Positions 56-33,753 of a stretch of DNA of 64,000 nt are shown piece by piece. The notes under the pieces are model-generated. The model saw only the letters and a list, made by a program, of their open reading frames with translations, ran no database searches and was not told the DNA's origin. The stretch lies in the IMG/VR virus record IMGVR_UViG_3300028920_000001, positions 362,961-426,960 of that record; one strand, 5' to 3'. Every line of letters begins with the position of its first letter. Position 1 is the stretch's first letter. Position numbers and translations under genes: made by a program.

Positions 56-3000
56 ATGACAATTGGACCTTTCACGACGTATGCCCCTCCTGGCGTCTAC
101 ACTCAGACTATTGTTGAGCCAGTCGTTATTCAGCTCCTAGGAGGGCTGAGGGTTCCGGTATTGATCGGAACGGCCCAAGAGACACTCACTCAGACCGATT
201 TTGAAATGATTCGTGGGTCCAGCAGCGTGGCTGATACCCCGATCTTCAATGAGGATGTCTCTGGTCGGTGGATTGTTAGTGGGACTAATCAAAATCCTAT
301 TATCGGTAGTCAAGATGGGACCCTTTTTAAATTTAAAGTTCGTAATTATCCGATTGTTGATGGTGATGGTCTTGGTCGTACTACATTTGATGTAACCAAG
401 GTTTCGGTTACTGTTAATGGTGAAGCTACAGTTGTTTCCCAGGTTGATGGCACTAATGGTGTTATTACCTTATTAACTGCTCCTCAGTCTACCGATACTG
501 TTCTAATCAGTTATTTCTTCCATCGGAAAGATACCCGTATCACCGATGACGTTTCTGATCAGGTGACCGAGGACGCAGCGTCCTTGATTGCTCCCAAGGC
601 TGAAACCTACGAGATTACGACTGGTACTAATGATACATTAACTGTGTATATTAATGATGCAATTGCATCAAATTCGGTTACTTTGACCGCTGGAATTCGA
701 AGTGCCACAGACATTGCTAATGATATTAATGGAGCAGGCGTTACTGGGTTGACCGCTACTGTCCATGTTGATAACCAAGGTTTGAATCATCTGCGACTGA
801 ATGCCCAAGGCAACATTTTAATCGGTAGTGGTACTGCCAATGGTATCCTTGGGTTTAATCCCGGAGATTACACTAATCGTACTCGTGTATTCCGTACGTA
901 TCAAGGTCCGATTGTAGATGGTTCTGATGGTGGTATCACTACCACTGAACCTTCCAAGGTGACGGTCTTGGTCAATGGAGTCCAGGTAGTTGCATCCGAG
1001 GTGGATGGTACCAATCGCTTGGTTACTCTGCCAACTGCTCCGGTTCCTGGTGCTATTGTCACAATTGAATATTGGTTCAATACTTGGCAGGATACGTTTG
1101 ATTATCTGCCGAATTCAAATATTGTGACGATGGGCAATGTGGGTATCTCGCCTGGTCGGCGAGATTATCTGAATGGTCCGGACTTTGTAGTCGTTAATGA
1201 AAACGACCAGTCCAAGATTCTGTGGGGCACAGCTTGGCAGGTTGTTTCTGGTGAGGTCACCGGGTCTACGCCGCTTGATTCCACACAGGTTACCGCCATG
1301 TTGGTGGATGACCGAATGTACGCGGTTGAATTAGATCGGTATGTAGATACTACTACTAACACAGTATCTTCTACACAATTTGAGCTTCCACTGATCGCCA
1401 CTACCGGTAATGGACGAGATACGCCGCTTGGTACATCTGTTTACCAGACTGTGACCAATAGCCGGATTGATCTGCCAACAAATCGTCCTGATTTGGTGAT
1501 TGTTCATACTGGCAAGACTCCTAGGGATGCCCTTTCTCGGCCTCCGGTTACGGTTCTCGAGGTTAACATCAGCAATAATACCATAGTTCTTCAGGATACG
1601 GTGCCTGCGGACTATAATGCTTATGCCACTTTCTGGTATAACCGCACAGTTGATGATAATTACACTTTGACTTGTCAAACACCTGGTGCCAGTGGGATTG
1701 GCAAGTTTACGGTTACTTCCGAGCTAAATAACGATGTTAATCTTTACAGTGTCATCTTTGGTACTAAGAATGCATTGCCTCAGACAGTGCAATGGCCAAG
1801 TGGGGTGGAGAAGATAACTGATGCTATCCATTATGGTGGACAGCCTGTGCCCGAGACAGTTACTATCACTTTTGATAGTACGCTGCTTCCAAACACTCAT
1901 GCGTCGTTCTCGAATGCTCTGCCTGAGCCATACGACCTATATACTACTTATAGTGATCAATTTGGTGGGATTCGGATTGATGGAGCTTCTGCATTCTCTG
2001 TTGATTTGAATACGGCGTTCGCTGCTCAGTTGTTAGGTAGTCCGGTTTCCGGTACTCTGCCGGCAGCTATTACGACAACTGATGAGCTCGTGCTTGAGAT
2101 TGATGGAGTTATTCTAAATATCAATGAGACGACTGTTACGGCAGCTGCAGGCACTTGGTCTACCGTTACCACCCTTGCAGGTGTGGTTACTGCCATTAAT
2201 GCTGTAATTGATGCTGACGTTCAAGTTCATCCTGATGGATCTGGCACGTTTGCTTCAACAGCGGCTAATAGTCTGGCTTCCGTAGTTACTTATGGGACTC
2301 AGAGCATTCTGAAGATTGCCGGTAGAAATGTTCAAACTTCTACCAATGGTCTAGAATCTCAGGTTAAGGTTCTGACTCCAACTACTGTTGGTCAGGTTGA
2401 TATTTCGGCCACTCTTGGTTTCACTCCGAATCAAGAATCCCTTGGTAGCTGGGATGGTTTGAATCAGCCAGCAGAGATCATTAGTTCGGTTGATGCTCCG
2501 TACTTGATTACTGCTAGTGTGGATGATTCTTTCCTGTTCAATATTGATGGACAGGATTATCAAGCTACCATTCCGTCTGGTTCGGCGGTGACTCAGGGTC
2601 AGGTGGTTGATGCTATTAATGCTGGGTATCTAGACACTGCTCCTGCTGCTGATCAGGCTACTGCGTTGGCTCAGGCTATTGTAGTGGCGAACTCATTGGC
2701 TACTAATTACGGTGGCCATCAGGCTTTGGCTACTTGGCACGTATTAGCGGATGCTGCTAATAATGTGACAGCGCCTGTGGCCACTGATTTGTCATCATTG
2801 CTTACTTTGTTAGCAGATATTAAGGCCCAGTTCAATGCCCATATCATTAATACTGGTGGTGTTTATCATAATGGCTCGACTGATACCACCAATACGATAT
2901 CAGCAGCTGATCCGACTACTCTGGAAGAAGCTATCAATTTCATCTGGGTTTTGAAGAATAATTTCAATTCGCACTTGGCGACAGCCGGAACCATCCACCT

Positions 3001-4771
3001 TTTGGCTGATGCAACCAACGTTGAGACTAATAGTAACTCTCAGTTGGTAGCAATTGCTGGTGCAGGTTTGTACGCGAATAAGATTATTCTTAGATCGCGT
3101 GTCAATACCATTTCTTCGCGAGTGGCAATTAGTACGTTGGGGACTGCCAATACGAAGCTCGGGTTTACTGCTGGTGATTCGGCCTCTGTTAATCAACCAA
3201 CTGCTTCTCGTTTAGCAGCTGCTTTGAATGCTGATGCTACTTTTGCTGCAGCGGCAGTGGCATGGCCAGTAACGACCCAGGGTCGTGGCACATTCCTCCA
3301 GATTGATTCTCTTTCTGCCGGTATCGGCTCCAGTATCACTTTCACTAGTGTGACTGGCACGGTCTTTACCACAGATACGGGAATCGGTATTACTCCTGGT
3401 GTTAGTGGTGATATCGGTGAGGCAGCCACTGCTGGTTATACAGTTTCCTCTTCGAATCCAAATGGATCAAGCGGAACTGGTGTTCCGGGCCAGACTTATA
3501 CAGATGCTCAGACCGGGCTTCGGTTCACTGTTCTTCCGGCATCTGCTGGTGATTACGCTGATGGTGGTTCGTTCACTTTGATTGTGAATTCCACCTTCAC
3601 TGCTGATGCCTCAATTCCGTCTCGAGCTATTCCGGGCTTGGAATTCTACGTTTTCAACACCCTGAATGTGGGCGTTGATTCGACAGCTATTCTGAGCACA
3701 TTTAATAAGGGTGGTTCGGAACCAGCAGTGGGTGACGTTTACTACGTCAGCTACAACTACGCTAAGTCGGATATTTCCACTGCCCTATTCCGGGATCTGA
3801 AGAAGATTCAGCAGAATTTTGGAGCTCCTACTCCCGAAAATCCGCTCAGTCTTGGAGCTCGGTTGGCTCTGTTAAATGGTTCGGTTCTGCTTGGCCTGCG
3901 TCAGGTGCTTCGAGCCCCGAATTCAGCTCAAGCTTCTCTGCAATCATACGCAGATGCTATCAATGAGCAGAAGAAACCAATTGAGGGCAGCGTGAAGCCG
4001 GATGTATTGGTTGCTCTAGCAACTGATCCAGAAATCTTCAGTTTGCTGAATCAGCATGCTGTGTTCATGTCCGCTCCGCGCCAGGAAGGTGAGCGAATTA
4101 GCATCGGTGGTGTTGCAGCTGGTACCACCCCGTTGGGTGTGCGTGCTATTGCTCAAGGTCTGCAATCTGAGTTGTTCATTCTGACTTATCCTGATACTTT
4201 CGTAATTTCGGTTACGGATCAGCAGGGTAATACGGTTGAACAGCTGATTGATGGCTCGTATGCTGCAGCGGCTTTAGCGGGTAGTGCAACCAATCCGGCT
4301 GTAGATGCCGCTACCCCATGGACTCGTCGTCAAGTTCTCGGGTTCAAGAGGTTGGGCCGCATTCTGGATCCGACTGAAGCTAATCAGGTGGCGGTCAGTG
4401 GTGTCAGCATTATTGAGCGAGTCGACACCGGGATGCGAATTCGCCACGGGTTGACGACTCGAATTGATAACGTCATTACGCGTACACCGAGCGTGACGTT
4501 GACGATTCATTACATCCAGCAGTCTACTCGCCGAACTTTGGATCCATACATTGGGCAGAAGTTCACGAGCACTCTGATTAAGTCGGTTGAGTCCAAACTG
4601 AACGGTATGTTCAGCGGACTTATCGATAAGGAAATTGTAACTGAGGTTGGTGGAATTGCGGTGACGATTGATGAAGATGATCCTACTATCATGAGGACGT
4701 CTGCCATCTACGTCCCAGTGTTCCCGCTTGAGTATATCGTTAGTACCTTCCAGGTACGAATTCGGCTCTAA
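56..4771 (+). CDS. Contractile tail sheath protein, unusually large (1571 aa) with multiple insertion domains
   Basis: N-terminal APPGVY motif typical of sheaths; C-terminal sheath-like domain (…RIRHGLTT…KFTSTLIKSVESKLNGMFSGL…YVPVFPLEYIVSTFQV); lies upstream of tube, tape measure and baseplate genes. Confidence 0.9.
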   Translation: MTIGPFTTYAPPGVYTQTIVEPVVIQLLGGLRVPVLIGTAQETLTQTDFEMIRGSSSVADTPIFNEDVSGRWIVSGTNQNPIIGSQDGTLFKFKVRNYPIVDGDGLGRTTFDVTKVSVTVNGEATVVSQVDGTNGVITLLTAPQSTDTVLISYFFHRKDTRITDDVSDQVTEDAASLIAPKAETYEITTGTNDTLTVYINDAIASNSVTLTAGIRSATDIANDINGAGVTGLTATVHVDNQGLNHLRLNAQGNILIGSGTANGILGFNPGDYTNRTRVFRTYQGPIVDGSDGGITTTEPSKVTVLVNGVQVVASEVDGTNRLVTLPTAPVPGAIVTIEYWFNTWQDTFDYLPNSNIVTMGNVGISPGRRDYLNGPDFVVVNENDQSKILWGTAWQVVSGEVTGSTPLDSTQVTAMLVDDRMYAVELDRYVDTTTNTVSSTQFELPLIATTGNGRDTPLGTSVYQTVTNSRIDLPTNRPDLVIVHTGKTPRDALSRPPVTVLEVNISNNTIVLQDTVPADYNAYATFWYNRTVDDNYTLTCQTPGASGIGKFTVTSELNNDVNLYSVIFGTKNALPQTVQWPSGVEKITDAIHYGGQPVPETVTITFDSTLLPNTHASFSNALPEPYDLYTTYSDQFGGIRIDGASAFSVDLNTAFAAQLLGSPVSGTLPAAITTTDELVLEIDGVILNINETTVTAAAGTWSTVTTLAGVVTAINAVIDADVQVHPDGSGTFASTAANSLASVVTYGTQSILKIAGRNVQTSTNGLESQVKVLTPTTVGQVDISATLGFTPNQESLGSWDGLNQPAEIISSVDAPYLITASVDDSFLFNIDGQDYQATIPSGSAVTQGQVVDAINAGYLDTAPAADQATALAQAIVVANSLATNYGGHQALATWHVLADAANNVTAPVATDLSSLLTLLADIKAQFNAHIINTGGVYHNGSTDTTNTISAADPTTLEEAINFIWVLKNNFNSHLATAGTIHLLADATNVETNSNSQLVAIAGAGLYANKIILRSRVNTISSRVAISTLGTANTKLGFTAGDSASVNQPTASRLAAALNADATFAAAAVAWPVTTQGRGTFLQIDSLSAGIGSSITFTSVTGTVFTTDTGIGITPGVSGDIGEAATAGYTVSSSNPNGSSGTGVPGQTYTDAQTGLRFTVLPASAGDYADGGSFTLIVNSTFTADASIPSRAIPGLEFYVFNTLNVGVDSTAILSTFNKGGSEPAVGDVYYVSYNYAKSDISTALFRDLKKIQQNFGAPTPENPLSLGARLALLNGSVLLGLRQVLRAPNSAQASLQSYADAINEQKKPIEGSVKPDVLVALATDPEIFSLLNQHAVFMSAPRQEGERISIGGVAAGTTPLGVRAIAQGLQSELFILTYPDTFVISVTDQQGNTVEQLIDGSYAAAALAGSATNPAVDAATPWTRRQVLGFKRLGRILDPTEANQVAVSGVSIIERVDTGMRIRHGLTTRIDNVITRTPSVTLTIHYIQQSTRRTLDPYIGQKFTSTLIKSVESKLNGMFSGLIDKEIVTEVGGIAVTIDEDDPTIMRTSAIYVPVFPLEYIVSTFQVRIRL

Positions 4772-4834: not shown

Positions 4835-5362
4835 CTATTTCCCGCTATTATTCTTGGTAGGCGGAAGCAGGGGCATCGAGTCGATAGCGGCAGTCAAAGC
4901 CTTCATTGATTTACGACTCTTGTTGACCTCCCGCTTGACGTCAGCGCTGAGTTTGTTGACATCTACATTCTTATCTGTGGATTCTAAACTCGCGGCACTG
5001 GACTTAACCCGACGACGCTTTCGACGGTGAACAGTACGAGCCAAATCTTCATCATCAACTGTTGCTCGTACTCCCTCAACTTTATCAAACCAGATTTCCC
5101 GGTGATATTTTCGGCTCAGGATTCGGTTGGCACTGGCTAGAACACTGGAGAGGCGATTTTTGACTTGGTCGCTATCTTCCCCAGGAATTCGGCTCAAGCC
5201 GAAGGCGACCTTAGCGATATATCGTTTATCAAAAAAGGCGAGTGGGAGTTCATCGGCTCCGGTGTTTAAGAACTCGGCAGCTCGTTCGCCATAAGTTCCG
5301 GTGTTGTCAGTTTTATAAGATTTTAGAAATTCAGCAGGTGATCTTACAGTGCGTTTTGACAT
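4835..5362 (-). CDS. Basic 175-aa protein, putative winged-helix + coiled coil (cassette gene C2)
   Basis: Paralog of 7164-7688: shared RAxxFL, RATVxDEDxAR and terminal LLPP motifs. Confidence 0.8.
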   Translation of the reverse strand: MSKRTVRSPAEFLKSYKTDNTGTYGERAAEFLNTGADELPLAFFDKRYIAKVAFGLSRIPGEDSDQVKNRLSSVLASANRILSRKYHREIWFDKVEGVRATVDDEDLARTVHRRKRRRVKSSAASLESTDKNVDVNKLSADVKREVNKSRKSMKALTAAIDSMPLLPPTKNNSGK

Positions 5363-6286
5363 TTATTTCTCCATCTGTTCGTTCCAGAGTTCTACGACCT
5401 CCCACGCTTCATTTACAGCGTGATATTGTTTAACCAGCTTGTCACTTCCATTGTTCCGATCCGGATGATACCTTGCGGCCAATCTTTTGTAAACCGATCT
5501 GGCTCTTTTAATATCGACTTTATGTCTACCTCTAGGTCTAGAGATACCGAGGGTTTCGCAGGCGTTACGGATGGCAGTAACAGTAATAGTGTCGGTGTCA
5601 GAAGGAGTGAAATCCCGCCTAAGATTTCTAATTTTCTTGAGAAGATCTTCATAGGTGACGCGGACTTCGTACTCGAAATCTTCAACTAGCCCTCTTCTTA
5701 CATCAGGTTCAATACCTTCTAATCTTACATTGACGAATGTATCTGTTAACGCCTTGATACTGGCGTAAAACATTCGGGCGTTGTCGGCTCTAAGATCTTC
5801 AGGATTGATTTCTGGAATTGAAGGTTTTGTTTTTTTAGATTTAGGTTTTTTGGGTGGTCGTCTTCGATGAATATACCCGTCTTTATTAGGATAATCTATG
5901 TATTTATCTGAAAAATATTCCTCAAGGAATTCTTTTAATTTGGTAGGATCTCCTTTGGCTTTTTTTCCAAGAACATAAGCTGTAGCCAGGGGCATTTTTC
6001 TAACCGCGATGGCATCCCATAGTGGTTTGGCTAGATCCCCCATTAATAAAATTCCGGCTCTCTTGGCAGGGCCATATGTATTTTTTGCTCCAATTTCTAC
6101 AAACCATTGACTTCTTCTTAGAGGAGTTTTATCTCCTTTGTCACGTCGGTTAATGCTATAGAAGGACCAAACTTTTCTTTCAAGTTTAGCTATTTTATAT
6201 TGATTGGTTGGGATGTCTTTTTCATACTCTTCAAGTAATTCAAGGATTAGCTCTTCTACATGCTTATCAAGGTTCTGCAGATTCAT
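5363..6286 (-). CDS. J-domain (DnaJ-like) protein with HTH-like N-terminus (cassette gene B2)
   Basis: C-terminal ACETLGI…ARSVYKRLAARYHPDRNNGS…YHAVNEAWEVV with intact HPD motif; paralog of 7685-8548. Confidence 0.85.
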   Translation of the reverse strand: MNLQNLDKHVEELILELLEEYEKDIPTNQYKIAKLERKVWSFYSINRRDKGDKTPLRRSQWFVEIGAKNTYGPAKRAGILLMGDLAKPLWDAIAVRKMPLATAYVLGKKAKGDPTKLKEFLEEYFSDKYIDYPNKDGYIHRRRPPKKPKSKKTKPSIPEINPEDLRADNARMFYASIKALTDTFVNVRLEGIEPDVRRGLVEDFEYEVRVTYEDLLKKIRNLRRDFTPSDTDTITVTAIRNACETLGISRPRGRHKVDIKRARSVYKRLAARYHPDRNNGSDKLVKQYHAVNEAWEVVELWNEQMEK

Positions 6287-7163: not shown

Positions 7164-7688
7164 TTATTCTTTTTCTTCCTGGACTGGAGGCAACAGTTTC
7201 TGAATTCGATCATCAGAAATCAGGTTACTGATTTTCTTGACATTACGGACGAAGCTACGAAGTTTACGACCTTCAGGATTTGAGGTTGAAATCTTACGGG
7301 CATCGATCATGCCGAGGCTATTATCAACACTAACCTTGGCTGAGGCTAATCGCTTAGTACGGTCAGCTAAATCAAATCGAGCTTTATCTTCATCATTGAC
7401 AGTGGCACGGTAGCCAACTCCGCGTTGGCAGATATACCCACGTTGATATTCTTTGCGTAGAAGATCACGGGCTCGAGTCATACATGCCCGTACGCTATCT
7501 GCTTCCTTGGAAGTAGCACGTGGTGTATGATTATAACCATTAATGGCTTTTACGATTTCCTGTGCCGGGAAATACTGATACCGCAAATTCTTAGCGGCCC
7601 AGTCGAGGAAATGAGCAACACGTTGAGTTAGGCTCATCCCAGGAAGTGACTGGTAATCCGCTACTGCCGCCTTTCGTTTCTTGGTCAT
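7164..7688 (-). CDS. Basic 174-aa protein, putative winged-helix + coiled coil (cassette gene C1)
   Basis: VRACMTRARDLLR…ICQRGVGYR resembles the OmpR-type wing motif; paralog of 4835-5362; 4-nt overlap with the upstream gene. Confidence 0.8.
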   Translation of the reverse strand: MTKKRKAAVADYQSLPGMSLTQRVAHFLDWAAKNLRYQYFPAQEIVKAINGYNHTPRATSKEADSVRACMTRARDLLRKEYQRGYICQRGVGYRATVNDEDKARFDLADRTKRLASAKVSVDNSLGMIDARKISTSNPEGRKLRSFVRNVKKISNLISDDRIQKLLPPVQEEKE

Positions 7689-8548
7689 AGCTTCTCCTTA
7701 TTCAAGGAATCATTGTATTCCTTGAGAATTTCGTGTGCTCCTACTGCTTCTTCAAACAAATCCCTAGTCTCTTCATTGCCACCGTGAGCATCAGGATGAT
7801 ACAACCTGGTGAGTCTTTTCATTTGTTTAGTAGCTTGTTTTAGATCTATTGGTTGATTAATTGGAGGCGAATCAATTTGTAGGATTTTACAAGCGCGAAT
7901 CAATTTTTTTCGATCTATTGTAGTTCCGAATTTAATTTTGCTTTTTGCGGCTCGGGCAGCTCTGGATTGCCAACCCATGATTAATGTTTTCAAATCAATT
8001 TCAAATTCTCTTAGAAGATTATCTTTTTCAATTTCAAGTAAATCTCCGAGTTTTCCTTCAAGATGATCAGTGATCATCATTCTGATTTGTGCCCAGAATG
8101 GTTTATCTCCGTTTTCTCGAACAATTAAACCAATCCCAGTTTCAGTTTTTCTTTTAATGATTGGAAATTTTTTCTTAATTTGTTTTCCACTGGGGAGTCG
8201 TGCTTCATAGGATTTATTTTCATATTTATTGAATTCAATATTTAGTGCTTTTTCAATTGGTTCTCCTCGTCTTTTAGCTGTAGTGATTATTCGATAAATA
8301 GTATGAAAAGGCATTCCATTTTCAAGTCTTTCCCAAAGAGGACTTGATAATCTAGGTGGTAACTTATAAATTGACCGTCGAGTTCGATATTGAATATCAG
8401 TGATTCCGAGAGTATGAACGACAGTTTTGGCTGCTCTTTTACTGTTTTGGATACCTTTATAATGTTTCCAAAGGGTATACTCGAATTCAGCTTTCTCCTC
8501 TTGGGTGGAAAGTTTCTGATATTCTTCCACTAATTGACTCGTGTTCAT
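7685..8548 (-). CDS. J-domain (DnaJ-like) protein with HTH-like N-terminus (cassette gene B1)
   Basis: C-terminal ACKILQI…ATKQMKRLTRLYHPDAHGGNEETRDLFEEAVGAHEIL with intact HPD motif. Confidence 0.85.
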   Translation of the reverse strand: MNTSQLVEEYQKLSTQEEKAEFEYTLWKHYKGIQNSKRAAKTVVHTLGITDIQYRTRRSIYKLPPRLSSPLWERLENGMPFHTIYRIITTAKRRGEPIEKALNIEFNKYENKSYEARLPSGKQIKKKFPIIKRKTETGIGLIVRENGDKPFWAQIRMMITDHLEGKLGDLLEIEKDNLLREFEIDLKTLIMGWQSRAARAAKSKIKFGTTIDRKKLIRACKILQIDSPPINQPIDLKQATKQMKRLTRLYHPDAHGGNEETRDLFEEAVGAHEILKEYNDSLNKEKL

Positions 8549-9670: not shown

Positions 9671-9910
9671 ATGTACAGTTTGAATATGAATCATCAATTT
9701 GAAGAATATCAAGGTCCGGAGAAGCACAACAATCAATGGGAATTTACTAATGGGGATGATCGAATTCAAATTAATTTAGAAATGAATATTGTTTATGGAG
9801 ATAAAATGAAAAAGTGTAAATACTGCGGACTCATGTATGCCGTGGAATTTGAACAGCCGAAATTTCAGACTTGTGAAGAAGTGTATGTTGATGAGGTAAT
9901 GAAATCATGA
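9671..9910 (+). CDS. Small hypothetical protein with CxxC and C-terminal VDEVMKS
   Basis: 79-aa ORF, ATGA-coupled to the next gene; CKYC motif. Confidence 0.65.
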   Translation: MYSLNMNHQFEEYQGPEKHNNQWEFTNGDDRIQINLEMNIVYGDKMKKCKYCGLMYAVEFEQPKFQTCEEVYVDEVMKS

Positions 9911-10392
9911 GTTCTAGTGTTCAAGCTCAGATTGATGATGATATCCTTAAGCATTTGCTTAAGGGTTTAACTCAAACAGTATCTTCGATACCAATTTCAA
10001 TCCAAACCAGGATTACTGAGTTTGTTGGGTTTGAATCAGATATTTTATTAGCCAAGCGGCTTTACTCCGGTCTTTTAGGAAAGGGGACATTTCAAGGTCA
10101 AACAATCAAATTTGAAGATACGGAATATTCATTAAGCTGGGCTAGTGAATCTCAAATGCGAATTCCTCCCATTCAGATTCAAACTAATCCTAGTTTTAGT
10201 TTGGATCAGGTCAAGATGGTTTATAATAAGCCTCAGTTTATGGTTTATGAAGAACCAGTGAAGATGGGTACCGAAAATCCATTGGTTGAACTTCGTAATG
10301 CACTCATACGTTGTCATCGAGAAGGTATTTCAATCAAACAAGTAGATGAAACTTATGTGTTAGCAGTAGCTCAATGGGTAATGGATCAATGA
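9907..10392 (+). CDS. Hypothetical protein ending in VAQWVMDQ
   Basis: 161-aa ORF with ATGA overlaps on both sides. Confidence 0.75.
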   Translation: MSSSVQAQIDDDILKHLLKGLTQTVSSIPISIQTRITEFVGFESDILLAKRLYSGLLGKGTFQGQTIKFEDTEYSLSWASESQMRIPPIQIQTNPSFSLDQVKMVYNKPQFMVYEEPVKMGTENPLVELRNALIRCHREGISIKQVDETYVLAVAQWVMDQ

Positions 10393-10799
10393 TTTTAAGG
10401 GTTGTTCTTGACAAAATAAATGCGGGGTCACCGCCGGCCGTCCAATATCAAAAAAATGAAAAGGATAAGTGTCTTATTTCAGTTGATGATAAGACAGCTG
10501 CTACACCTTGGTCTAATGTAAAAGATACTACTTTTTCAGTCCCTTTACATCATTTAGATGCGAATGAAGCTAAACAATTTTTAAAGGATCGATTTGCTTG
10601 CTTGAATGAAGATGGTTGTATTATGGTTCCTTATATGAGTCCTGTAAATGGAGAGGTTGTATTTGGATTAGTATATTATCCTAAAAGAACATTCATGTCA
10701 TTTGATAACAATCATAATATGGCACAACCATTTGAACCGAATGTTTTAGTAGATTATTTAATTAATATTATGCTAGTAGATGAAGTTATGGATAACTAA
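10389..10799 (+). CDS. Hypothetical protein ending in VDEVMDN
   Basis: Start moved from 10374 to the in-frame ATG at 10389, which overlaps the upstream TGA (ATGA). Confidence 0.75.
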
Positions 10800-11404
10800 G
10801 GATTAGCTAAATCAGTAGTATTTCCAGTATCAGCTCGAGCCTTCAGTTTTCCATCTCCTGAGTCTGCCCAAACATACCAAGAACCAGTAGGTGGGGTTCC
10901 AGGATCAGAAATTGTTGAAAGTTCCAATAATGGACCCAATACTCCGGTAGCCCCTTGAGGTCCTGTAGCACCTATTGGGCCCGTTGGACCTATCGGTCCA
11001 GTTACAATTGACCCTGTTATTCCTTGTGGACCTACTGGCCCTGCTGGTCCAGGTGATCCCTGAGGACCTGCTGGTCCAGGTGGACCGATCGGTCCTTGTA
11101 TTCCCTGTGGACCTTGGAACTGCTGGATTTGTGGATCTACTGTGTTATTCTGAAGGAATCGAATAGTGAAGCCATATTCAAAAATATTAGATACTTGAGT
11201 ATTTATACTGGTGATGGTGACTTGAGAAATTGACCACTCATCAGGAGATAGGCTCAGGGTATTAAATATTTGTCTGTAGTTTTCCGGTTTATTTAGTTCT
11301 GTAACAGGATTAGGTAAAATCGCATTTGAGGTTAGGGAAACAAAGGCGTTGACTACATTATTATAATTTGAAGTTAGTTTTTCAACGCCTACGTTCGTAG
11401 TCAT
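10796..11404 (-). CDS. Short collagen-like (Gly-X-Y) protein, possible fibre or decoration protein
   Basis: Central [16 protein letters not shown]…GATG tract between small N- and C-terminal domains. Confidence 0.8.
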
Positions 11405-11834: not shown

Positions 11835-13382
11835 ATGGGACTATTACGTACAGCCGGTTCATACCTCAGCGCACTTTCCACAGGAGAGTACGAAATCCCT
11901 AATCCTCTGGCAGCTGCGGTCAATTATGCCATTGATTCATATTTTGCTAAGAGAGATGAACGGGCTCGGATAGCTGAAGCTAATCGTAAAGAAATGCCAA
12001 TGGACCTTGATGTATATCTCAAGGAAGTTTGGCTTGGATGTGAAATTCATAAGGCTATCAATCTTTCAGGTAGTTATCCGGCATATGCTAAAGCTGTTAA
12101 TGCTTGGGCATTCACTCGAATGTTTACTGCGTATGCTGGAGCGAATGCTTCGTATGAGATAGTTCCGGTTCTAGATCAATCTGAATATAAAGATTATTTG
12201 AAGAGTAACCGAGAATATAGAACTCAATATGAACCTATAAATATTAGTTTGACCCAAGCTGTCACTCTTCCGGTATACGGGACTTTCTTCGTTAAGAATC
12301 GAAGGACTGGAGCCCATCTAATAATTGCGTTTGACTTCTGTTACTATGGAATGGGATGCAGCGTTAGTGTGATGGCTCATTCTCACGGCCAGCATGAAGC
12401 TGAAGCCTTCCTGGCCGATTTGACTGGTTCAATTCAGGCCAATAACATTTATTTCAAGAGTTGCCTCTCATTCAATAGAGGATACCTTGATTTTCATTAT
12501 GTAATTCCAACTACTTGGCAACAGGTAATTTTAAAGGATAGTCTGAGAACGCAAATTCAGAAGAATTCTGTTGGAGTTCTTGATCATATTTCTGATTTAT
12601 CATCTATTGGAATGAGTGCTAATCAAAGTATGCTTTTGATTTCGCCGCCCGGAATGGCTAAGACTACTATGTTCCGGGCTACTTCCAATGAGATTAATGA
12701 GCAAGCTACCCGAATTTGGTGTACTGGTAAGTCTATTTCATATCCGGAACATGTTACTGCGTTGTTTGAAGCAGCTCGAGATTTAAGTCCGTCAGTTATA
12801 TTTATTGAAGATATGGACCTATTTGGTGGTGATCGTAGCACCTTAGGTCGAGATAGTAGTGTTTTGAATGAATTTTTAGCTCAACTTGATGGGACTCAAT
12901 CTAATGCGGGCGTCGTCATTATGGCATCCACTAATGATCTTGACTCTATGGACGAGGCTTTGATCAATCGTCCCGGTCGATTTGGGGTTAAGATTGAAAT
13001 ACCATATCCGGATGCTGAGGATCGGAAGAAAATGCTGGTTTCCTTCTTTAAGGCGTACCATGCAAGGCCGGCTCCTTCAGTTAGCGATGAAGGCTGGGAT
13101 AATATTGTTAAATTAACTGCTGGTTTTACTGGAGATTATATTAGGGAAGTAGCCAAGACAGCGGTAATTAAGGCTGTGGCTGAGGGCCGATGTTTAAGTG
13201 GTCAAGTTAGTTTTACAATGGACGATTTGACTGCAGCTGGGGAACAAGTTTTACAGAATTACCGGATCGGCAAGAGAGCCAAGAGACATCACACTATCTC
13301 TATTGAAGATGGTGGGGAACCCGTAGAGGCAGTAATAGCTTCAGAAGGTCCGAAGGAACCTTCTATGAAGTTAGTATCATAG
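11835..13382 (+). CDS. AAA+ ATPase (classical-clade, single module) with unknown N-terminal domain
   Basis: Walker A variant ISPPGMAKT, Walker B VIFIEDMD, sensor-1 and second region of homology STNDLDSMDEALINRPGRF. Confidence 0.9.
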   Translation: MGLLRTAGSYLSALSTGEYEIPNPLAAAVNYAIDSYFAKRDERARIAEANRKEMPMDLDVYLKEVWLGCEIHKAINLSGSYPAYAKAVNAWAFTRMFTAYAGANASYEIVPVLDQSEYKDYLKSNREYRTQYEPINISLTQAVTLPVYGTFFVKNRRTGAHLIIAFDFCYYGMGCSVSVMAHSHGQHEAEAFLADLTGSIQANNIYFKSCLSFNRGYLDFHYVIPTTWQQVILKDSLRTQIQKNSVGVLDHISDLSSIGMSANQSMLLISPPGMAKTTMFRATSNEINEQATRIWCTGKSISYPEHVTALFEAARDLSPSVIFIEDMDLFGGDRSTLGRDSSVLNEFLAQLDGTQSNAGVVIMASTNDLDSMDEALINRPGRFGVKIEIPYPDAEDRKKMLVSFFKAYHARPAPSVSDEGWDNIVKLTAGFTGDYIREVAKTAVIKAVAEGRCLSGQVSFTMDDLTAAGEQVLQNYRIGKRAKRHHTISIEDGGEPVEAVIASEGPKEPSMKLVS

Positions 13383-13966: not shown

Positions 13967-14245
13967 TTGCCTACTGAGCACGAAGAACCTACTCCGCAAT
14001 TAGCCCCTGGAATTGGATTTGTATTGGAAGGGGATGGGCGGTGGGATGTCCAGACAATTCCGTCGAAGGTAGTTGATTCGGCAGAATTTAATGGATATTT
14101 GACTATTCAAGGATATAAATGTGCAGTATTTATCACCCCTGAGGGTGAGCAATGGGCACAGAAGGTATCTGGAACTCCTGCCCCTAAGGGTGATAATGAT
14201 TTGACACAGATGGCTACTAAAATTGCTAATTTAACTTATAACTAA
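13967..14245 (+). CDS. Hypothetical protein
   Basis: 92-aa ORF with TTG start immediately after the upstream TAA; protein-like composition. Confidence 0.55.
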   Translation: MPTEHEEPTPQLAPGIGFVLEGDGRWDVQTIPSKVVDSAEFNGYLTIQGYKCAVFITPEGEQWAQKVSGTPAPKGDNDLTQMATKIANLTYN

Positions 14246-15779
14246 ATTTGTGTTTTTCAGGGATTTTCATTTTAATTAAATTCATTTGATTAGCATATTC
14301 TAATTCGGTTAGTCCGATCTTTTTTCCTTCGTTGTATACCCATTTCTTATTGATTTGATTTCCATTGATATCTAAATATACATGACTAGTAGAAGTTAAT
14401 TTTTCGTATTTCCAATTTGAAGCTTTATATATAGTACCTTCGTGTCCTTGCATTGTGTCAGCAAATGACACTAGTATTTGAATTTCAGGATGACTTGATT
14501 TTATTAATTTAATGACTTGTCCTAAGATTTTGGAAGCTAAATTTTTCTTTTGATATTCCGGATGAATGCAAAATCGATCCAATTCTAATACTTGAGATAC
14601 TGTATAACCCATAGATGTGGCTACTTCTTTCCTGACTACCGGGGAAAATTTACAAATTGCAATTAGTTTATTGTCTAAGTATACTCCATAGTATATTTTA
14701 GCTGTTCTGCCATATTGAGCGTAATGGTATTTTTCGAGGAATATTCGAGTCATTTTAGGATCAGGATTTGATCTTATCAGGATTTGGTCTAAAGAAAAAT
14801 TGATTTGAGTATAATTTATTTTGGTTTTAGTGATTTGTTTATTCAGCCTTTTCCTGATTTCAGTTCGAATTCTATGACAATTGGCACATACTAATTCACA
14901 TTTGGCAATTTCTTGTTTAATAAAATTCAAACTTCGATTTTGGATCTTATTGATTGAAAAAGTTTTATTTTCAAGATGATCAAAATCTAATATCCAGTAT
15001 CGAAAATTCCGTTTGCAATCTGTACATTGTTTATTGTCCTTTTGAGATATTATGTATGCTTTAGAGGTTCTTAATTTTCTATCTAAATTATTATTATATT
15101 GTCTTAAGCAAGTCTTGCAATAAGAATGTCTATATCCAGTTTTAAGAAGAGTAAAATTGTTAACGTGCTTAGATGTTTGACATTTGGCACAAAATTTAAC
15201 TGGATCTGAGGCTAATAAAATCGGAATTTCATTTATTTTGGGTTTGTATATTCTATTTTTATTAGTATCTATTTCGGTTTCTCTTGTAAAAGTTTCATCT
15301 CGATGACAATTGGCACATATTAATTCACATTTAGCAATTTCTGTTTGAATTCTAGAAATTTTCTTTTCATATAACTTAGAAATATTTGCAACTTTAGTAT
15401 TTAGCTGAAGATGATTAAAATCCATTACGCATTGTGGATAAATTTTTCCACATTTGGAACAAGACTTATTAAGTTTTTCTTCTCTAATATACTTGTATGA
15501 TCTTTGTGCAGTCTTTTTGTGCATTCTTTTTTCTCGTTCAGGATTATCCTTTCTCCATCGTTTAATTTTCTTTTTATGACATTCTTTACAAATTTGTCTG
15601 AATTGATAATTTTGAACAAATTCTCGGAGTTGTTTAGGGTCTTTACAATATTTACAAATTTGTATGAGAGATAAATTTTCAGAATAAAATTGCTGATACT
15701 CTTGGTTTTTCTTTTGATCTAATAATTTTCTTTGTTGTTTTTCTTCAGGTGTTCGTTTCATCCCAATACCATTATACAT
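14226..15779 (-). CDS. Tandem HNH-type endonuclease/zinc-ribbon protein fused to a Mom-like GNAT DNA-modification domain
   Basis: Two CxxC…DF[ND]H…CEL[IV]CANCHR units, two CxxC…CxxC ribbons, and C-terminal ELDRFCI…ILVSFADTMQGHEGTIYKASNWKY. AT-rich and antisense to the tail operon. Confidence 0.8.
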   Translation of the reverse strand: MYNGIGMKRTPEEKQQRKLLDQKKNQEYQQFYSENLSLIQICKYCKDPKQLREFVQNYQFRQICKECHKKKIKRWRKDNPEREKRMHKKTAQRSYKYIREEKLNKSCSKCGKIYPQCVMDFNHLQLNTKVANISKLYEKKISRIQTEIAKCELICANCHRDETFTRETEIDTNKNRIYKPKINEIPILLASDPVKFCAKCQTSKHVNNFTLLKTGYRHSYCKTCLRQYNNNLDRKLRTSKAYIISQKDNKQCTDCKRNFRYWILDFDHLENKTFSINKIQNRSLNFIKQEIAKCELVCANCHRIRTEIRKRLNKQITKTKINYTQINFSLDQILIRSNPDPKMTRIFLEKYHYAQYGRTAKIYYGVYLDNKLIAICKFSPVVRKEVATSMGYTVSQVLELDRFCIHPEYQKKNLASKILGQVIKLIKSSHPEIQILVSFADTMQGHEGTIYKASNWKYEKLTSTSHVYLDINGNQINKKWVYNEGKKIGLTELEYANQMNLIKMKIPEKHKFSYKLN

Positions 15780-30754: not shown

Positions 30755-33022
30755 ATGGGAAAAACAGAAGAAGCTAAAGCTAGATATCGGGCGATGCATA
30801 ATATTGCATCAACACAAGATCCGGTCAGAACTACTAAACAGCAATCCCAAAATGCTGATGATGCTAAGGCTTTCCTATGGATAGGGCGGATTCTCCATGT
30901 AGATGTGGAGACTATGGTTTGTTCTATTCAGATGGAATCAGGGCAGGGAATCTGGCATGATGTTCCTTTACCTGCTCCTGGAGGAGGTGGCCCTAGATCT
31001 TGGTCAGGAGTGATTCCAGAACAAAATTCGCGTGCTTTGATTGGATGGAAAAAATATGGAAATCGAGGCCATAAGCCCTATATCATTACATATTGGACGA
31101 TAGGGACATTTTCAGCTCGAGAATTTGAACCATTTTCAACAGTTGATCCAAATGACGCAAATTCAGTTTTGACAGCAGATGCCGATTTAGCTAATTTTCC
31201 AGAATTAAATTTTAATATTATTAGATTAAAGTCTAGAAAAGCTTATGCTGGAGACTGGATTGCAACTTCTAGTGGAGGAGCTCATGCTCAATTAGATAGA
31301 GACGCATATTTAACCAATCGAGCTAACAATGAATTTAGATTACGAGATTCTGATCAAACTAGTATTCATCAGACAGTAAATGAATTTACTACTAATGCTG
31401 CCGGATATTATCGAAGAGGATTGATTAAGAGGAATGCATACAATTTTCAATTAGATTTAGCTCTTCCTCTTTATGATTATGAAGAACAGGATTTTGATGA
31501 ATTTGTTGATAGTCGAATTATTACTGGTACAGATAATCCTCAGTACACTTATTTAACTAAAGTTGATACTCTTTCTCCTGCTTACAGTAAATTACGAGAA
31601 TTTGAATTAATTAATGAGGATGGAACTCCGGTATTTCCGAATAATCCGGATGATTTGGTTTATCCGTATGTTGTTACTCCTGATGGACAACGGATTAGTT
31701 ATGTGGTTAGAGGAGAGCATGAAACCAATTTTAATCAAACTAACGAATGCTATGTTGAAGATAGAATAGAAATGCGGCATGTTAGTGATGGAATAATGGC
31801 TGTCACTGAGGAGGGCGATGGATTTCAAATTGATAGAATTTCACCAGTTTTCATTGAAGATGTGAAAGGCACAATTGTCGGAAATGATCCATATACGGAG
31901 GCAGGACGTAAAACATATAAACGAGTAGTTAAAATGAGAGTGTTTGAGAAGGAAGAACAAAGTCTTCCTTCCAATACTCCTGTATTTGAACCGATCGATA
32001 CGTTAAAACGGCCTAATGACACTGATACTGTGGCTTTGGCTCGTTTGTTTAAAGTTCAGTGTCCTGCTGAGGGTAGTAGTTCGAATCAATATGCTTTTGG
32101 AATTTCTAAGGAGGGGCAAGTATTTTTACATTTACCCAAAGCAACGGTTGGTGAAACACGGGGTAGATCTCTTGATGCAAATATTATGGGAGCTGTTAAA
32201 GCTATCCTTGGATCAGATGGTAGTCGTAAATCAATTGATTTAACTACAAGTGGTGGGATTAGAGCTAAATTAGGCACGTTAGTAGATGATACTGATCCAA
32301 ATAATCCAGAAAATGTTTCTGCGGATTTTGAATTTGATGGCGTAGTCAGATTAAAATTCAATGGTCCGAAAGCGATAGAAAAGATAGTTGAAGGGAGTGA
32401 AACCACATTTTGTAGTCAAACTTCTGCTAGAGTGGCAGGAGATGTTACTGACATTGCCCAGGGTGGTTCTGTTACTGCTGAAGGAACTAAAGTACGACAT
32501 ATTGCTGGTGATGGAGGATATACTCGTCTAGTTGGTGGCGATTCCGGGATGACTCATCTTGGTAAAACTGATCGACAATTCGCTCAAGATCGAACATCTA
32601 CATTTGCAGTTAATGATACTAAATTAGTACTAGCCGGGGTAGATTCAACTACAGTAGTAGCTGGTAGTATGAGTAGGACAGTCACTACCGGTAGTATTTC
32701 ACATAATGTCGCGACTGGAAATCATAGTATCACGGTTGGAGTTGGTAATGCTTCTTTAACTACAGGTACTGGAAATGTATCGGTAGCAGCTGGATCAGGT
32801 AATGCTTCTTTAGCTGCGGGTGCCGGGGCTGCAAGTATTACTGCAGGTGCTGCCGCTTCTTTAGTTGGTGGCACTGTCGCTAATGTTACAGCACCACTAG
32901 TTAAAATTGGAACGGTGCCTGTTGGTGTGTGCGTGGCTGGAGTTCCCGGTCCTCCCGGTCCAATGTTAGACTATGTAACCGGTTTACCATTGAGGGGTAT
33001 ACCAACTATATTGGTAGGATGA
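30755..33022 (+). CDS. Baseplate central spike (gp5/gpV-like)
   Basis: N-terminal OB-fold-like IGRILHVDVETMVCSIQM…VIPEQNSRALIGW; C-terminal ~9-residue periodic beta repeats (SITVGVGNASLTTGTGNVSVAAGSGN). Confidence 0.75.
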   Translation: MGKTEEAKARYRAMHNIASTQDPVRTTKQQSQNADDAKAFLWIGRILHVDVETMVCSIQMESGQGIWHDVPLPAPGGGGPRSWSGVIPEQNSRALIGWKKYGNRGHKPYIITYWTIGTFSAREFEPFSTVDPNDANSVLTADADLANFPELNFNIIRLKSRKAYAGDWIATSSGGAHAQLDRDAYLTNRANNEFRLRDSDQTSIHQTVNEFTTNAAGYYRRGLIKRNAYNFQLDLALPLYDYEEQDFDEFVDSRIITGTDNPQYTYLTKVDTLSPAYSKLREFELINEDGTPVFPNNPDDLVYPYVVTPDGQRISYVVRGEHETNFNQTNECYVEDRIEMRHVSDGIMAVTEEGDGFQIDRISPVFIEDVKGTIVGNDPYTEAGRKTYKRVVKMRVFEKEEQSLPSNTPVFEPIDTLKRPNDTDTVALARLFKVQCPAEGSSSNQYAFGISKEGQVFLHLPKATVGETRGRSLDANIMGAVKAILGSDGSRKSIDLTTSGGIRAKLGTLVDDTDPNNPENVSADFEFDGVVRLKFNGPKAIEKIVEGSETTFCSQTSARVAGDVTDIAQGGSVTAEGTKVRHIAGDGGYTRLVGGDSGMTHLGKTDRQFAQDRTSTFAVNDTKLVLAGVDSTTVVAGSMSRTVTTGSISHNVATGNHSITVGVGNASLTTGTGNVSVAAGSGNASLAAGAGAASITAGAAASLVGGTVANVTAPLVKIGTVPVGVCVAGVPGPPGPMLDYVTGLPLRGIPTILVG

Positions 33023-33753
33023 TGAAAAGGAAATGTTCAAAATGTGGAATTTCTAAGGATGAAAATGAATCCAATTTCAATAGAAGAGGTTATCCTAGAG
33101 TTGGATTTAGGTCTGAATGTAAAGAATGCTCTGCTAAATTAAAAAAGATGTATAGAGCTAACCCATTTGTTAAAAAAAGAGAAGCAACATATGAACATCA
33201 ATATAGAAAGACTGTAATGGGTAAGCTTAAAAAATCTAGACTTGAATCACGTCGAAAAAAAAATATGAAAATTAAAAATCGTAGATTAATTCAATCATTA
33301 AAATCAAATTCATGTACTGATTGTCATATTGTATATCCATATTATTGTATGGATTTTGATCATTTAGATCCGAATATTAAAAAATGGAATATTAATTCAA
33401 TCATGAATAAAGGAACTAATACGATTTTATCAGAAATACAAAAGTGTGAATTAGTTTGTGCTAATTGTCATAGATTGAGGGAATTCCACAGTAATATCAA
33501 ATTTTATGAATCATCTAGATATAAATCAGTATGGGATAGGATTCTTAAGATAATTAAAATAAAAAGTAAACCTTGTATGGATTGTGGAGGTCAATTTCAT
33601 TATTCTCAAATGGATTTTGATCATAAAAACGGAAAGATTCTAGAGGTAGCACGAATGAGGTATTCACCAAGTGTGTTTGATGAAATTAAGAAATGTGAAT
33701 TAGTTTGTGCTAATTGTCATAGAATTAGAACATATCAACGTGCAGTGGGATAA
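33019..33753 (+). CDS. Free-standing tandem HNH-type endonuclease (homing-endonuclease-like)
   Basis: Start moved to ATG 33019 (ATGA overlap with the spike stop). Zinc ribbon CSKC…CKEC plus two CxxC…DFDH…CELVCANCHR units; AT-rich. Confidence 0.8.
   Translation: MMKRKCSKCGISKDENESNFNRRGYPRVGFRSECKECSAKLKKMYRANPFVKKREATYEHQYRKTVMGKLKKSRLESRRKKNMKIKNRRLIQSLKSNSCTDCHIVYPYYCMDFDHLDPNIKKWNINSIMNKGTNTILSEIQKCELVCANCHRLREFHSNIKFYESSRYKSVWDRILKIIKIKSKPCMDCGGQFHYSQMDFDHKNGKILEVARMRYSPSVFDEIKKCELVCANCHRIRTYQRAVG

Follow-up and report, generated by a model that had tools for sequence, protein, structure and literature searches.

About a quarter of the proteins encoded by an uncultivated huge phage end in the same short peptide. 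The motif E-x-x-[VI]-x-x-[IV]-M-[EDNKQ]-S, immediately followed by the stop codon, closes 146 of its 549 open reading frames (ORFs). We argue that this proteome-wide C-terminal tag is probably a recognition or docking signal, which a single conserved, putative reader would bind together with the free alpha-carboxylate. An earlier note on this DNA had described the tag on three neighbouring proteins. Those three are genuine carriers, but the scale had been missed: ~27% of the proteome carries the tag, and it is found across a whole clade.

Cells are known to use short terminal address labels, and T4 and encapsulins do so on a modest scale. In the literature, we found no report of a phage-wide C-terminal motif, or of a virus with one label on roughly 150 unrelated proteins. 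If the tag is a sorting or docking code, sequence alone would define the accessory ‘effector’ proteome of the clade, that is, hundreds of unannotated dark-matter ORFans. Such a code would also provide a direct handle on the carriers’ common partner and would suggest a route by which newly born genes enter an existing pathway. From an applied perspective, the tag could serve as a ten-residue label to load or steer foreign proteins in large phage particles.

The phage genome and the analysed window

The window is a 64,000-nucleotide stretch, bases 362,961–426,960 of a 426,960-bp single-contig IMG/VR virus record (40% GC, standard genetic code). The record has direct terminal repeats and a completeness rating of 100%. 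The GenBank phage set held no cultured or annotated relative of this phage, which is a member of an uncultivated clade of huge phages of about 360–440 kb. The recognisable genes in the window are a collagen-repeat tail-fibre-like gene, a Mom-HNH fusion, an SLT lysozyme, a Cdc48/VAT-like AAA+ ATPase and a run of giant ORFs. Elsewhere, the genome encodes RuvB, RuvC, a clamp loader, DnaB, primase, ligase, RecA, sigma factors, a full DnaJ and an actin-like protein.

The giant ORFs (window 56–4771 and 18809–63998) encode proteins of 810–1997 aa, are almost without Pfam matches and are syntenic in all relatives; several of them are paralogues of one another. The run is presumably the virion module. 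The Mom-HNH fusion (window 14226–15779, minus strand) is a 517-aa protein combining HNH endonuclease-like modules with a Mom-like (GNAT) DNA-modification domain, and related pieces recur at 13967–14245 and 32929–33753. A two-gene module, encoding proteins of ~175 aa and ~300 aa, is present in tandem duplicate (window 4835–6286 and 7164–8548, minus strand). Its larger protein ends in a J domain, and the genome holds four J-domain proteins, including the full DnaJ (genome 37,762–38,847).

Three coupled genes with a shared ending

Three small ORFans on the plus strand introduce the tag. ORF1 (9671–9910, 79 aa) carries a CxxC...C arrangement right before the tag and ends in CEEVYVDEVMKS, with VYVDEVMKS as its final residues. 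The last ten codons, which encode the tag, lie at 9878–9907, and the stop overlaps the start of ORF2 (ATGA). ORF2 (9907–10392, 161 aa) ends in AVAQWVMDQ, a weak copy of the tag (8.9 bits with the position-specific scoring matrix, PSSM, described below; 10360–10389) whose last codons double, in another frame, as the first codons of ORF3. The latter (10374–10799, 141 aa) closes the unit and ends in MLVDEVMDN; its tag lies at 10767–10796, with no co-directional gene downstream. We place the start of ORF3 at 10374 because MGNGSM-type starts are kept in three of four database sequences (P0122–P0124, beginning MGDG, MGDE or MDNG), and it is from this start that the overlap with the tag codons of ORF2 follows.

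All three endings are as the earlier note had given them, and a re-reading agrees that the two VDEVM copies (ORF1 and ORF3) differ synonymously at three positions. The motif had been seen in its VM form. This form is real, but it is just half of the motif, since Ile is commoner than Val at position -4, and the ORF2 copy is weak. Homologues keep these endings: the ORF2 homologue P0126 (62% identity) closes with AVAQWVMEQ, and the ORF3 homologues P0122–P0124 (70, 57 and 39% identity) all retain LV[DE]EVM[DG][ND]. None of the three ORFs has a match in Pfam or in PHROG. An AlphaFold2 (AF2) model of ORF3, built from four sequences, is too poor for use (pLDDT 44) and hints only at a terminal helix.

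Convergent to ORF3, with a 4-nt overlap, lies the collagen-triple-helix repeat gene (10796–11404, minus strand), recognisable by its G-x-y repeats and tail-fibre-like PHROG matches. A 735-kb uncultured phage shares 70% identical DNA across the repeat of this gene.

Genome-wide enrichment and strict register

Genes were called crudely, as non-overlapping ORFs ranked by a codon log-odds model, so the tag counts among the resulting 549 genes are approximate. A protein was considered tagged when a PSSM of the last ten residues scored above 8 bits. Scores are bimodal: this threshold is exceeded at the terminus of 146 ORFs and in only 10 of 106,328 internal windows. The register is equally strict. 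Matches displaced by 1–12 residues from the terminus occur in 0–1 ORFs, and the tag stands at offset 0 alone in this genome and in three relatives.

Simpler counts agree. The pattern [VI]x{2,3}VMxx$, proposed earlier for a genome-wide scan, ends 57 of 549 ORFs against 0.11 expected from internal positions. C-terminal enrichment of the motif is enormous in the relatives too. The dipeptide VM at -4/-3 is found in 68 of 549 ORFs (0.86 expected; 0–2 at other C-terminal offsets), and Met at -3 in 161 of 549, a 13.8-fold enrichment. The remaining positions are I/V at -4, V at -7, E at -10, E at -2 and S at -1, with [EDNKQ]-[ST] as the last two residues of most carriers. The clade consensus, (C/P/D)-E-x-h-[VI]-x-x-[IV]-M-[EDN]-S-COOH, most likely folds as a short amphipathic helix at the end of the protein.

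Tagged proteins are typically small (median ~100 aa in this genome, range 60–365) and somewhat more basic than untagged small ones, significantly so in only two of four genomes. Their genes lie outside the structural module, mainly at 60–250 kb of the genome and often in runs of 2–7. Some tagged genes converge and end on each other. In one pair (genome 121,434–121,457; L004:11434–11457), the codons for ...VMES and the stops form a perfect 24-nt palindrome, GTTATGGAGTCA followed by TGACTCCATAAC, sharing TCATGA; in a second pair (genome 35,231–35,234), the overlap is TTAA.

A subset of carriers has Cys at -12, which is 2–3.5-fold enriched in all four genomes (9–25% of carriers, depending on the genome) and accompanied by an upstream CxxC. 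The CxxC lies 20–35 residues upstream, often as CxRCG...RH...H...C, and ORF1 (window 9671–9910) is an example. By this layout, a small zinc ribbon leads directly into the tag helix, and in these proteins the tag may be part of the fold.

A peptide signal rather than a DNA signal

One explanation places the conservation in the DNA, with the peptide as a by-product. That is, a conserved ...GGTRATGGAATCATGA would be a Shine-Dalgarno or termination-reinitiation element of the overlapping gene downstream, or a cassette recombination site. Some observations had pointed towards Shine-Dalgarno pairing or translational coupling: GAGGTGAT looks like an extended Shine-Dalgarno sequence, ATGA stop-start overlaps occur at ORF1/ORF2 and at many more tagged genes, and the junctions read GAGGTAATG...ATGA (ORF1/ORF2) and TGGGTAATG...ATGA (ORF2/ORF3). 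However, tagged and untagged small genes are alike in their downstream context (27% of both are convergent; 34 versus 31% overlap the next gene). The tag of ORF3 cannot be a coupling signal because no co-directional gene follows, and convergent tagged pairs likewise carry the tag without a downstream gene.

The codons themselves argue in the same direction. Third codon positions hold ~0.1 bit of information, and the 30 nt after the stop hold none. At -10, -7, -5 and -2, codon choice follows that of the genome, Ser at -1 is encoded by all six codons (AGY as well as TCN), and the same peptide is enriched at C-termini in genomes of 40, 50, 50 and 57% GC. Selection on the peptide rather than on a DNA motif, as the earlier note had read it from two synonymous copies, is borne out by these data. 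Together, downstream context and wobble positions rule out the coupling and recombination-site readings as the main cause, and we regard a nucleotide signal as the source of the motif as extremely improbable.

The tag nevertheless carries some signal at the nucleotide or translation level. Ser(-1) shows an excess of TCA codons, whether or not a start codon overlaps there, and G or C is favoured at the wobble position of -4 (genomes G000, G003 and G006). Moreover, TGA stops are commoner in tagged genes, significantly in G000 (p 0.02) and G006 (p 0.0006) and not in G003 or G013.

Unrelated and hypervariable carriers

The tag is shared by hundreds of fast-evolving ORFan proteins, most of them 60–250 aa long, that are otherwise dissimilar. 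After removal of the last 12 aa, a BLASTP paralogue within the genome is found for only 5 of the 146 tagged proteins. Pooling four genomes, 289 tagged proteins of 60–433 aa fall into 258 phmmer families, of which 16 have both tagged and untagged members. On these numbers we rejected a single paralogous family. Neither outcome that would have refuted the earlier note, a lack of C-terminal enrichment or carriers that are full-length homologues of one family, was observed. Since unrelated proteins experience selection on a common C-terminal peptide, a signal or docking motif in general, as the earlier note had proposed, is strongly supported.

Known domains among the carriers are rare. The 141 tagged proteins of this genome searched against Pfam yield only RuvC and a DnaJ-zinc-finger-like match, and 140 from relatives yield only a GIY-YIG match. 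RuvC is particularly informative. Most of its 120 homologues in a large protein collection end in ...LLxWLE plus a few residues, and the extra ...E[IT]V[EK][SE][IV]M.. is limited to the nearest relatives, which identifies the tag as an add-on; an AF2 model places it in a separate terminal helix, with low confidence. Both the RuvC resolvase and a GIY-YIG nuclease have thus gained a tag that members of their families elsewhere do without.

Tagged genes are the hypervariable fraction of the genome. Only 11 of 146 (8%) have a BLASTP homologue in three relatives, compared to 206 of 403 untagged genes (51%), and just 2 of the 117 genes common to all four genomes are tagged. Where orthologues are present, they mostly keep the tag, with the remaining sequence 21–40% identical. 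As a separate observation, a PhageMetallopep protein of 157 aa encoded beside the clamp loader (genome 278,803–279,276) shows phmmer likeness to two small tagged proteins of the 436-kb relative G003.

These data bear on the idea that the tag reflects common descent without a reader. Here, one ancient family would have diverged explosively, and the terminal helix would be a remnant kept for folding or self-association. Dense tandem arrays of tagged genes (e.g. 25 in 11 kb of a relative), the CxxC...C plus tag common to a subset and the recurrence of local sub-patterns such as EE[WYF][IV]V.EVMES are what such descent could leave behind. On the other hand, 258 families among 289 proteins and lengths of 60–433 aa fit it poorly, as does the presence of a tag on RuvC and GIY-YIG domains, whose families at large have none. 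An exact C-terminal register is not expected for an internal fold element, and conservation would still need a function. We consider common descent quite unlikely.

Spread and drift of the tag in the clade

Relatives were found by alignment of RuvC homologues, which gave 18 IMG/VR loci; the AAA+ ATPase as a single query in IMG/VR retrieved no close relatives. The strict DNA pattern RTNATGGARTCNTRA occurs 36 times in this genome and 56, 22, 5 and 4 times in four other complete genomes (363–436 kb), with no occurrence in reversed controls. At the protein level, tags end 81 of 529, 38 of 453 and 24 of 423 ORFs in relatives, and 14 of 191 in a 200-kb portion of a further one. An exact 15-mer scan of IMG/VR returned multiple matches within this clade only. 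A tag-rich 193-kb contig, IMGVR_UViG_3300036766_000359 (L156), belongs to the same clade. In G003, 25 tagged ORFs of at least 50 aa lie within 11 kb (50–61 kb; L131), so that tagged ORFs make up much of this array.

The tag is not identical everywhere. In G014 (L100–L109), the Met form is almost absent and many small proteins end in [VIL][VL][DE][SGA] with T at -7 (e.g. ...EVVDS, ...LLES or ...VIDG). Here V or L replaces Met(-3) and T replaces V(-7), and the ending looks like a variant of the same tag. Some orthologues in GC-rich genomes have Q or H at -3. These comparisons suggest that the tag drifts from lineage to lineage. In other lineages, RuvC homologues have a ...DVTS... tail.

Drift also matters for the possibility that the ten terminal residues do their work within the terminating ribosome (release, recycling or rescue) and not in the finished protein. 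The motif is as long as the upper ribosomal exit tunnel, its register to the stop codon is exact, and both the TCA over-use at -1 and the enrichment of TGA stops in tagged genes could be read in this light. Yet all three stop codons are in use, and this explanation offers no hint why hypervariable accessory genes alone would need the tag. The amphipathic i/i+3/i+4 pattern and the lineage change at -3 (M to V/L, or Q/H) resemble a co-evolving binding interface instead. Action on the nascent chain would also be without precedent at such a scale, and we judge it improbable.

Candidate readers and the question of degradation

If the tag is a docking signal, which protein could read it? One candidate is the Cdc48/VAT-like, single-ring AAA+ ATPase at window 11835–13382 (plus strand, 515 aa), which has a unique N-domain of ~240 aa. 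It is a core gene, present in every complete relative and in the variant-tag lineage, and it is the only such unfoldase found in the genome, where the other identified PF00004 matches are RuvB and the clamp loader. Because of its Cdc48/VAT-like nature, its conservation and its being the sole such unfoldase, this ATPase, which the earlier note had named as a candidate, is a reasonable possibility but nothing beyond that: we found no link between it and the tag, and a position beside 3 of the 146 tagged genes carries little weight. The full DnaJ of the phage (J domain, zinc finger and DnaJ_C) is likewise a core gene and a candidate. A single co-fold of the AAA+ N-domain (residues 1–250), the C-terminal part of DnaJ (120–361) and ORF1, run without controls, scored 0.01, a value that counts neither for nor against binding. 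A profile of the last 20 residues compared with all PDB sequences gave matches at chance level only.

Proteolytic enzymes were also considered. The subsite logic of a papain-like peptidyl-dipeptidase fits the motif (P2 = I/V, P1 = M, with a dipeptide leaving group). Peptidase_C1 is found in four relatives and is absent from this genome, the most tag-rich of all, and we rejected it as the processing enzyme. A split FtsH-like protease, made of a metallopeptidase and the adjacent AAA protein, was rejected as well: that AAA protein is the clamp-loader gamma/tau subunit, and another is RuvB. Searches of the genome for ClpP (PF00574) and PDZ_2 (PF13180) found neither, so a phage-encoded degradation route is short of parts.

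Would the tag then be a C-degron? In such a scheme, accessory (early) proteins would be destroyed at a set time. A host protease could do this, as could an unfoldase (e.g. the phage Cdc48-like AAA+) in partnership with a host peptidase. The presence of one Cdc48-like unfoldase as a core gene suits this, and known C-terminal degrons (ssrA read by ClpX) are recognised with their free carboxylate. Known bacterial C-degrons, however, end in non-polar residues (e.g. -LAA), and the polar -E-S end of the tag is unlike them. Neither ClpP nor a PDZ protein comes with the phage, the papain-like peptidase of the relatives is missing here, and it is hard to see why a phage would destabilise a quarter of its proteins. 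A degradation signal thus appears unlikely.

A probable docking tag and its possible destination

The docking or targeting signal is favoured by five properties taken together: the strict register, the helical i/i+3/i+4/i+7 hydrophobic pattern, purifying selection, repeated acquisition by unrelated proteins and lineage-specific drift at key positions. Such features characterise short linear recognition signals that co-evolve with one reader. Such a tag would give interchangeable accessory proteins one common handle.

Where the carriers would go is a more tentative matter. Our leading guess, held with limited confidence, is that the tag targets the head or the packaging machine, so that diverse small effectors would travel with the DNA. 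This guess is modelled on the conserved capsid targeting sequence of the diverse T-even internal proteins. T4 endonuclease VII is known to associate with the portal, and a tagged resolvase would fit an association with the packaging machine. Against this, the tagged genes are located away from the structural module, and a cargo of 146 different species would be unprecedented. Alternatives to packaging are timed turnover (the C-degron above), delivery to the phage DnaJ and docking to some other hub.

A more elaborate version of the docking signal is that the phage clade may run a sorting code of its own, an idea that we offer as speculative. A C-terminal ‘zip code’ would be carried by up to a quarter of the proteome, on small effectors that are interchangeable and rapidly invented. 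A dedicated conserved reader, possibly the Cdc48-like unfoldase, would route them to one destination (e.g. the capsid or ejection pathway), and new genes would become cargo by acquiring ten terminal residues.

Comparison with known systems

Large, rapidly diversifying effector repertoires that carry one short motif are known from RXLR and PEXEL proteins and from the C-terminal E-block of Dot/Icm substrates. The Dot/Icm signal is C-terminal and Glu-rich, with a hydrophobic residue near -3/-4. These systems belong to cellular pathogens with dedicated secretion machines, whereas no secretion system is evident in the phage.

The extracellular contractile injection systems (eCIS) may be similar in their genetic setting. 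In these systems, a Cdc48-like AAA+ protein (Pvc15/Afp15) is encoded beside tail-like structural genes; here, the neighbours are the conserved giant ORFs, and Pfam identified no family of sheath, tube or baseplate proteins. The known cargo signals of eCIS are leaders at the N-terminus, in contrast to the C-terminal phage tag.

In cells, the peroxisomal PTS1 (-SKL), KDEL, the EEVD end of Hsp70/90 (bound by TPR proteins or the DnaJ CTD) and ssrA (bound by ClpX) all combine an exact C-terminal register with few key residues and many unrelated carriers. Their receptors are known. The phage tag matches none of these cellular signals and reaches further into the protein, to -10 or -12, and in most carriers it ends in [EDNKQ]-[ST] rather than in the non-polar residues of ssrA-like degrons.

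Encapsulins provide another parallel, as a short C-terminal cargo-loading peptide docks unrelated cargo inside a shell of the HK97 fold. The phage tag is, likewise, a C-terminal peptide on unrelated carriers. The encapsulin consensus is Gly/Ser/Leu-rich, unlike the tag, and these shells take few cargo types each, with no strict distance between peptide and terminus.

Finally, the internal proteins of T-even phages are diverse defence-countering proteins whose sole common part is their targeting sequence (PMC3012670). Both they and the tagged proteins described here are diverse, fast-evolving small phage proteins with a short conserved terminal peptide. The T-even sequence sits at the N-terminus of a handful of proteins, from which the prohead protease cleaves it; the phage tag is C-terminal, keeps a strict register to the carboxylate and is carried by ~146 proteins.
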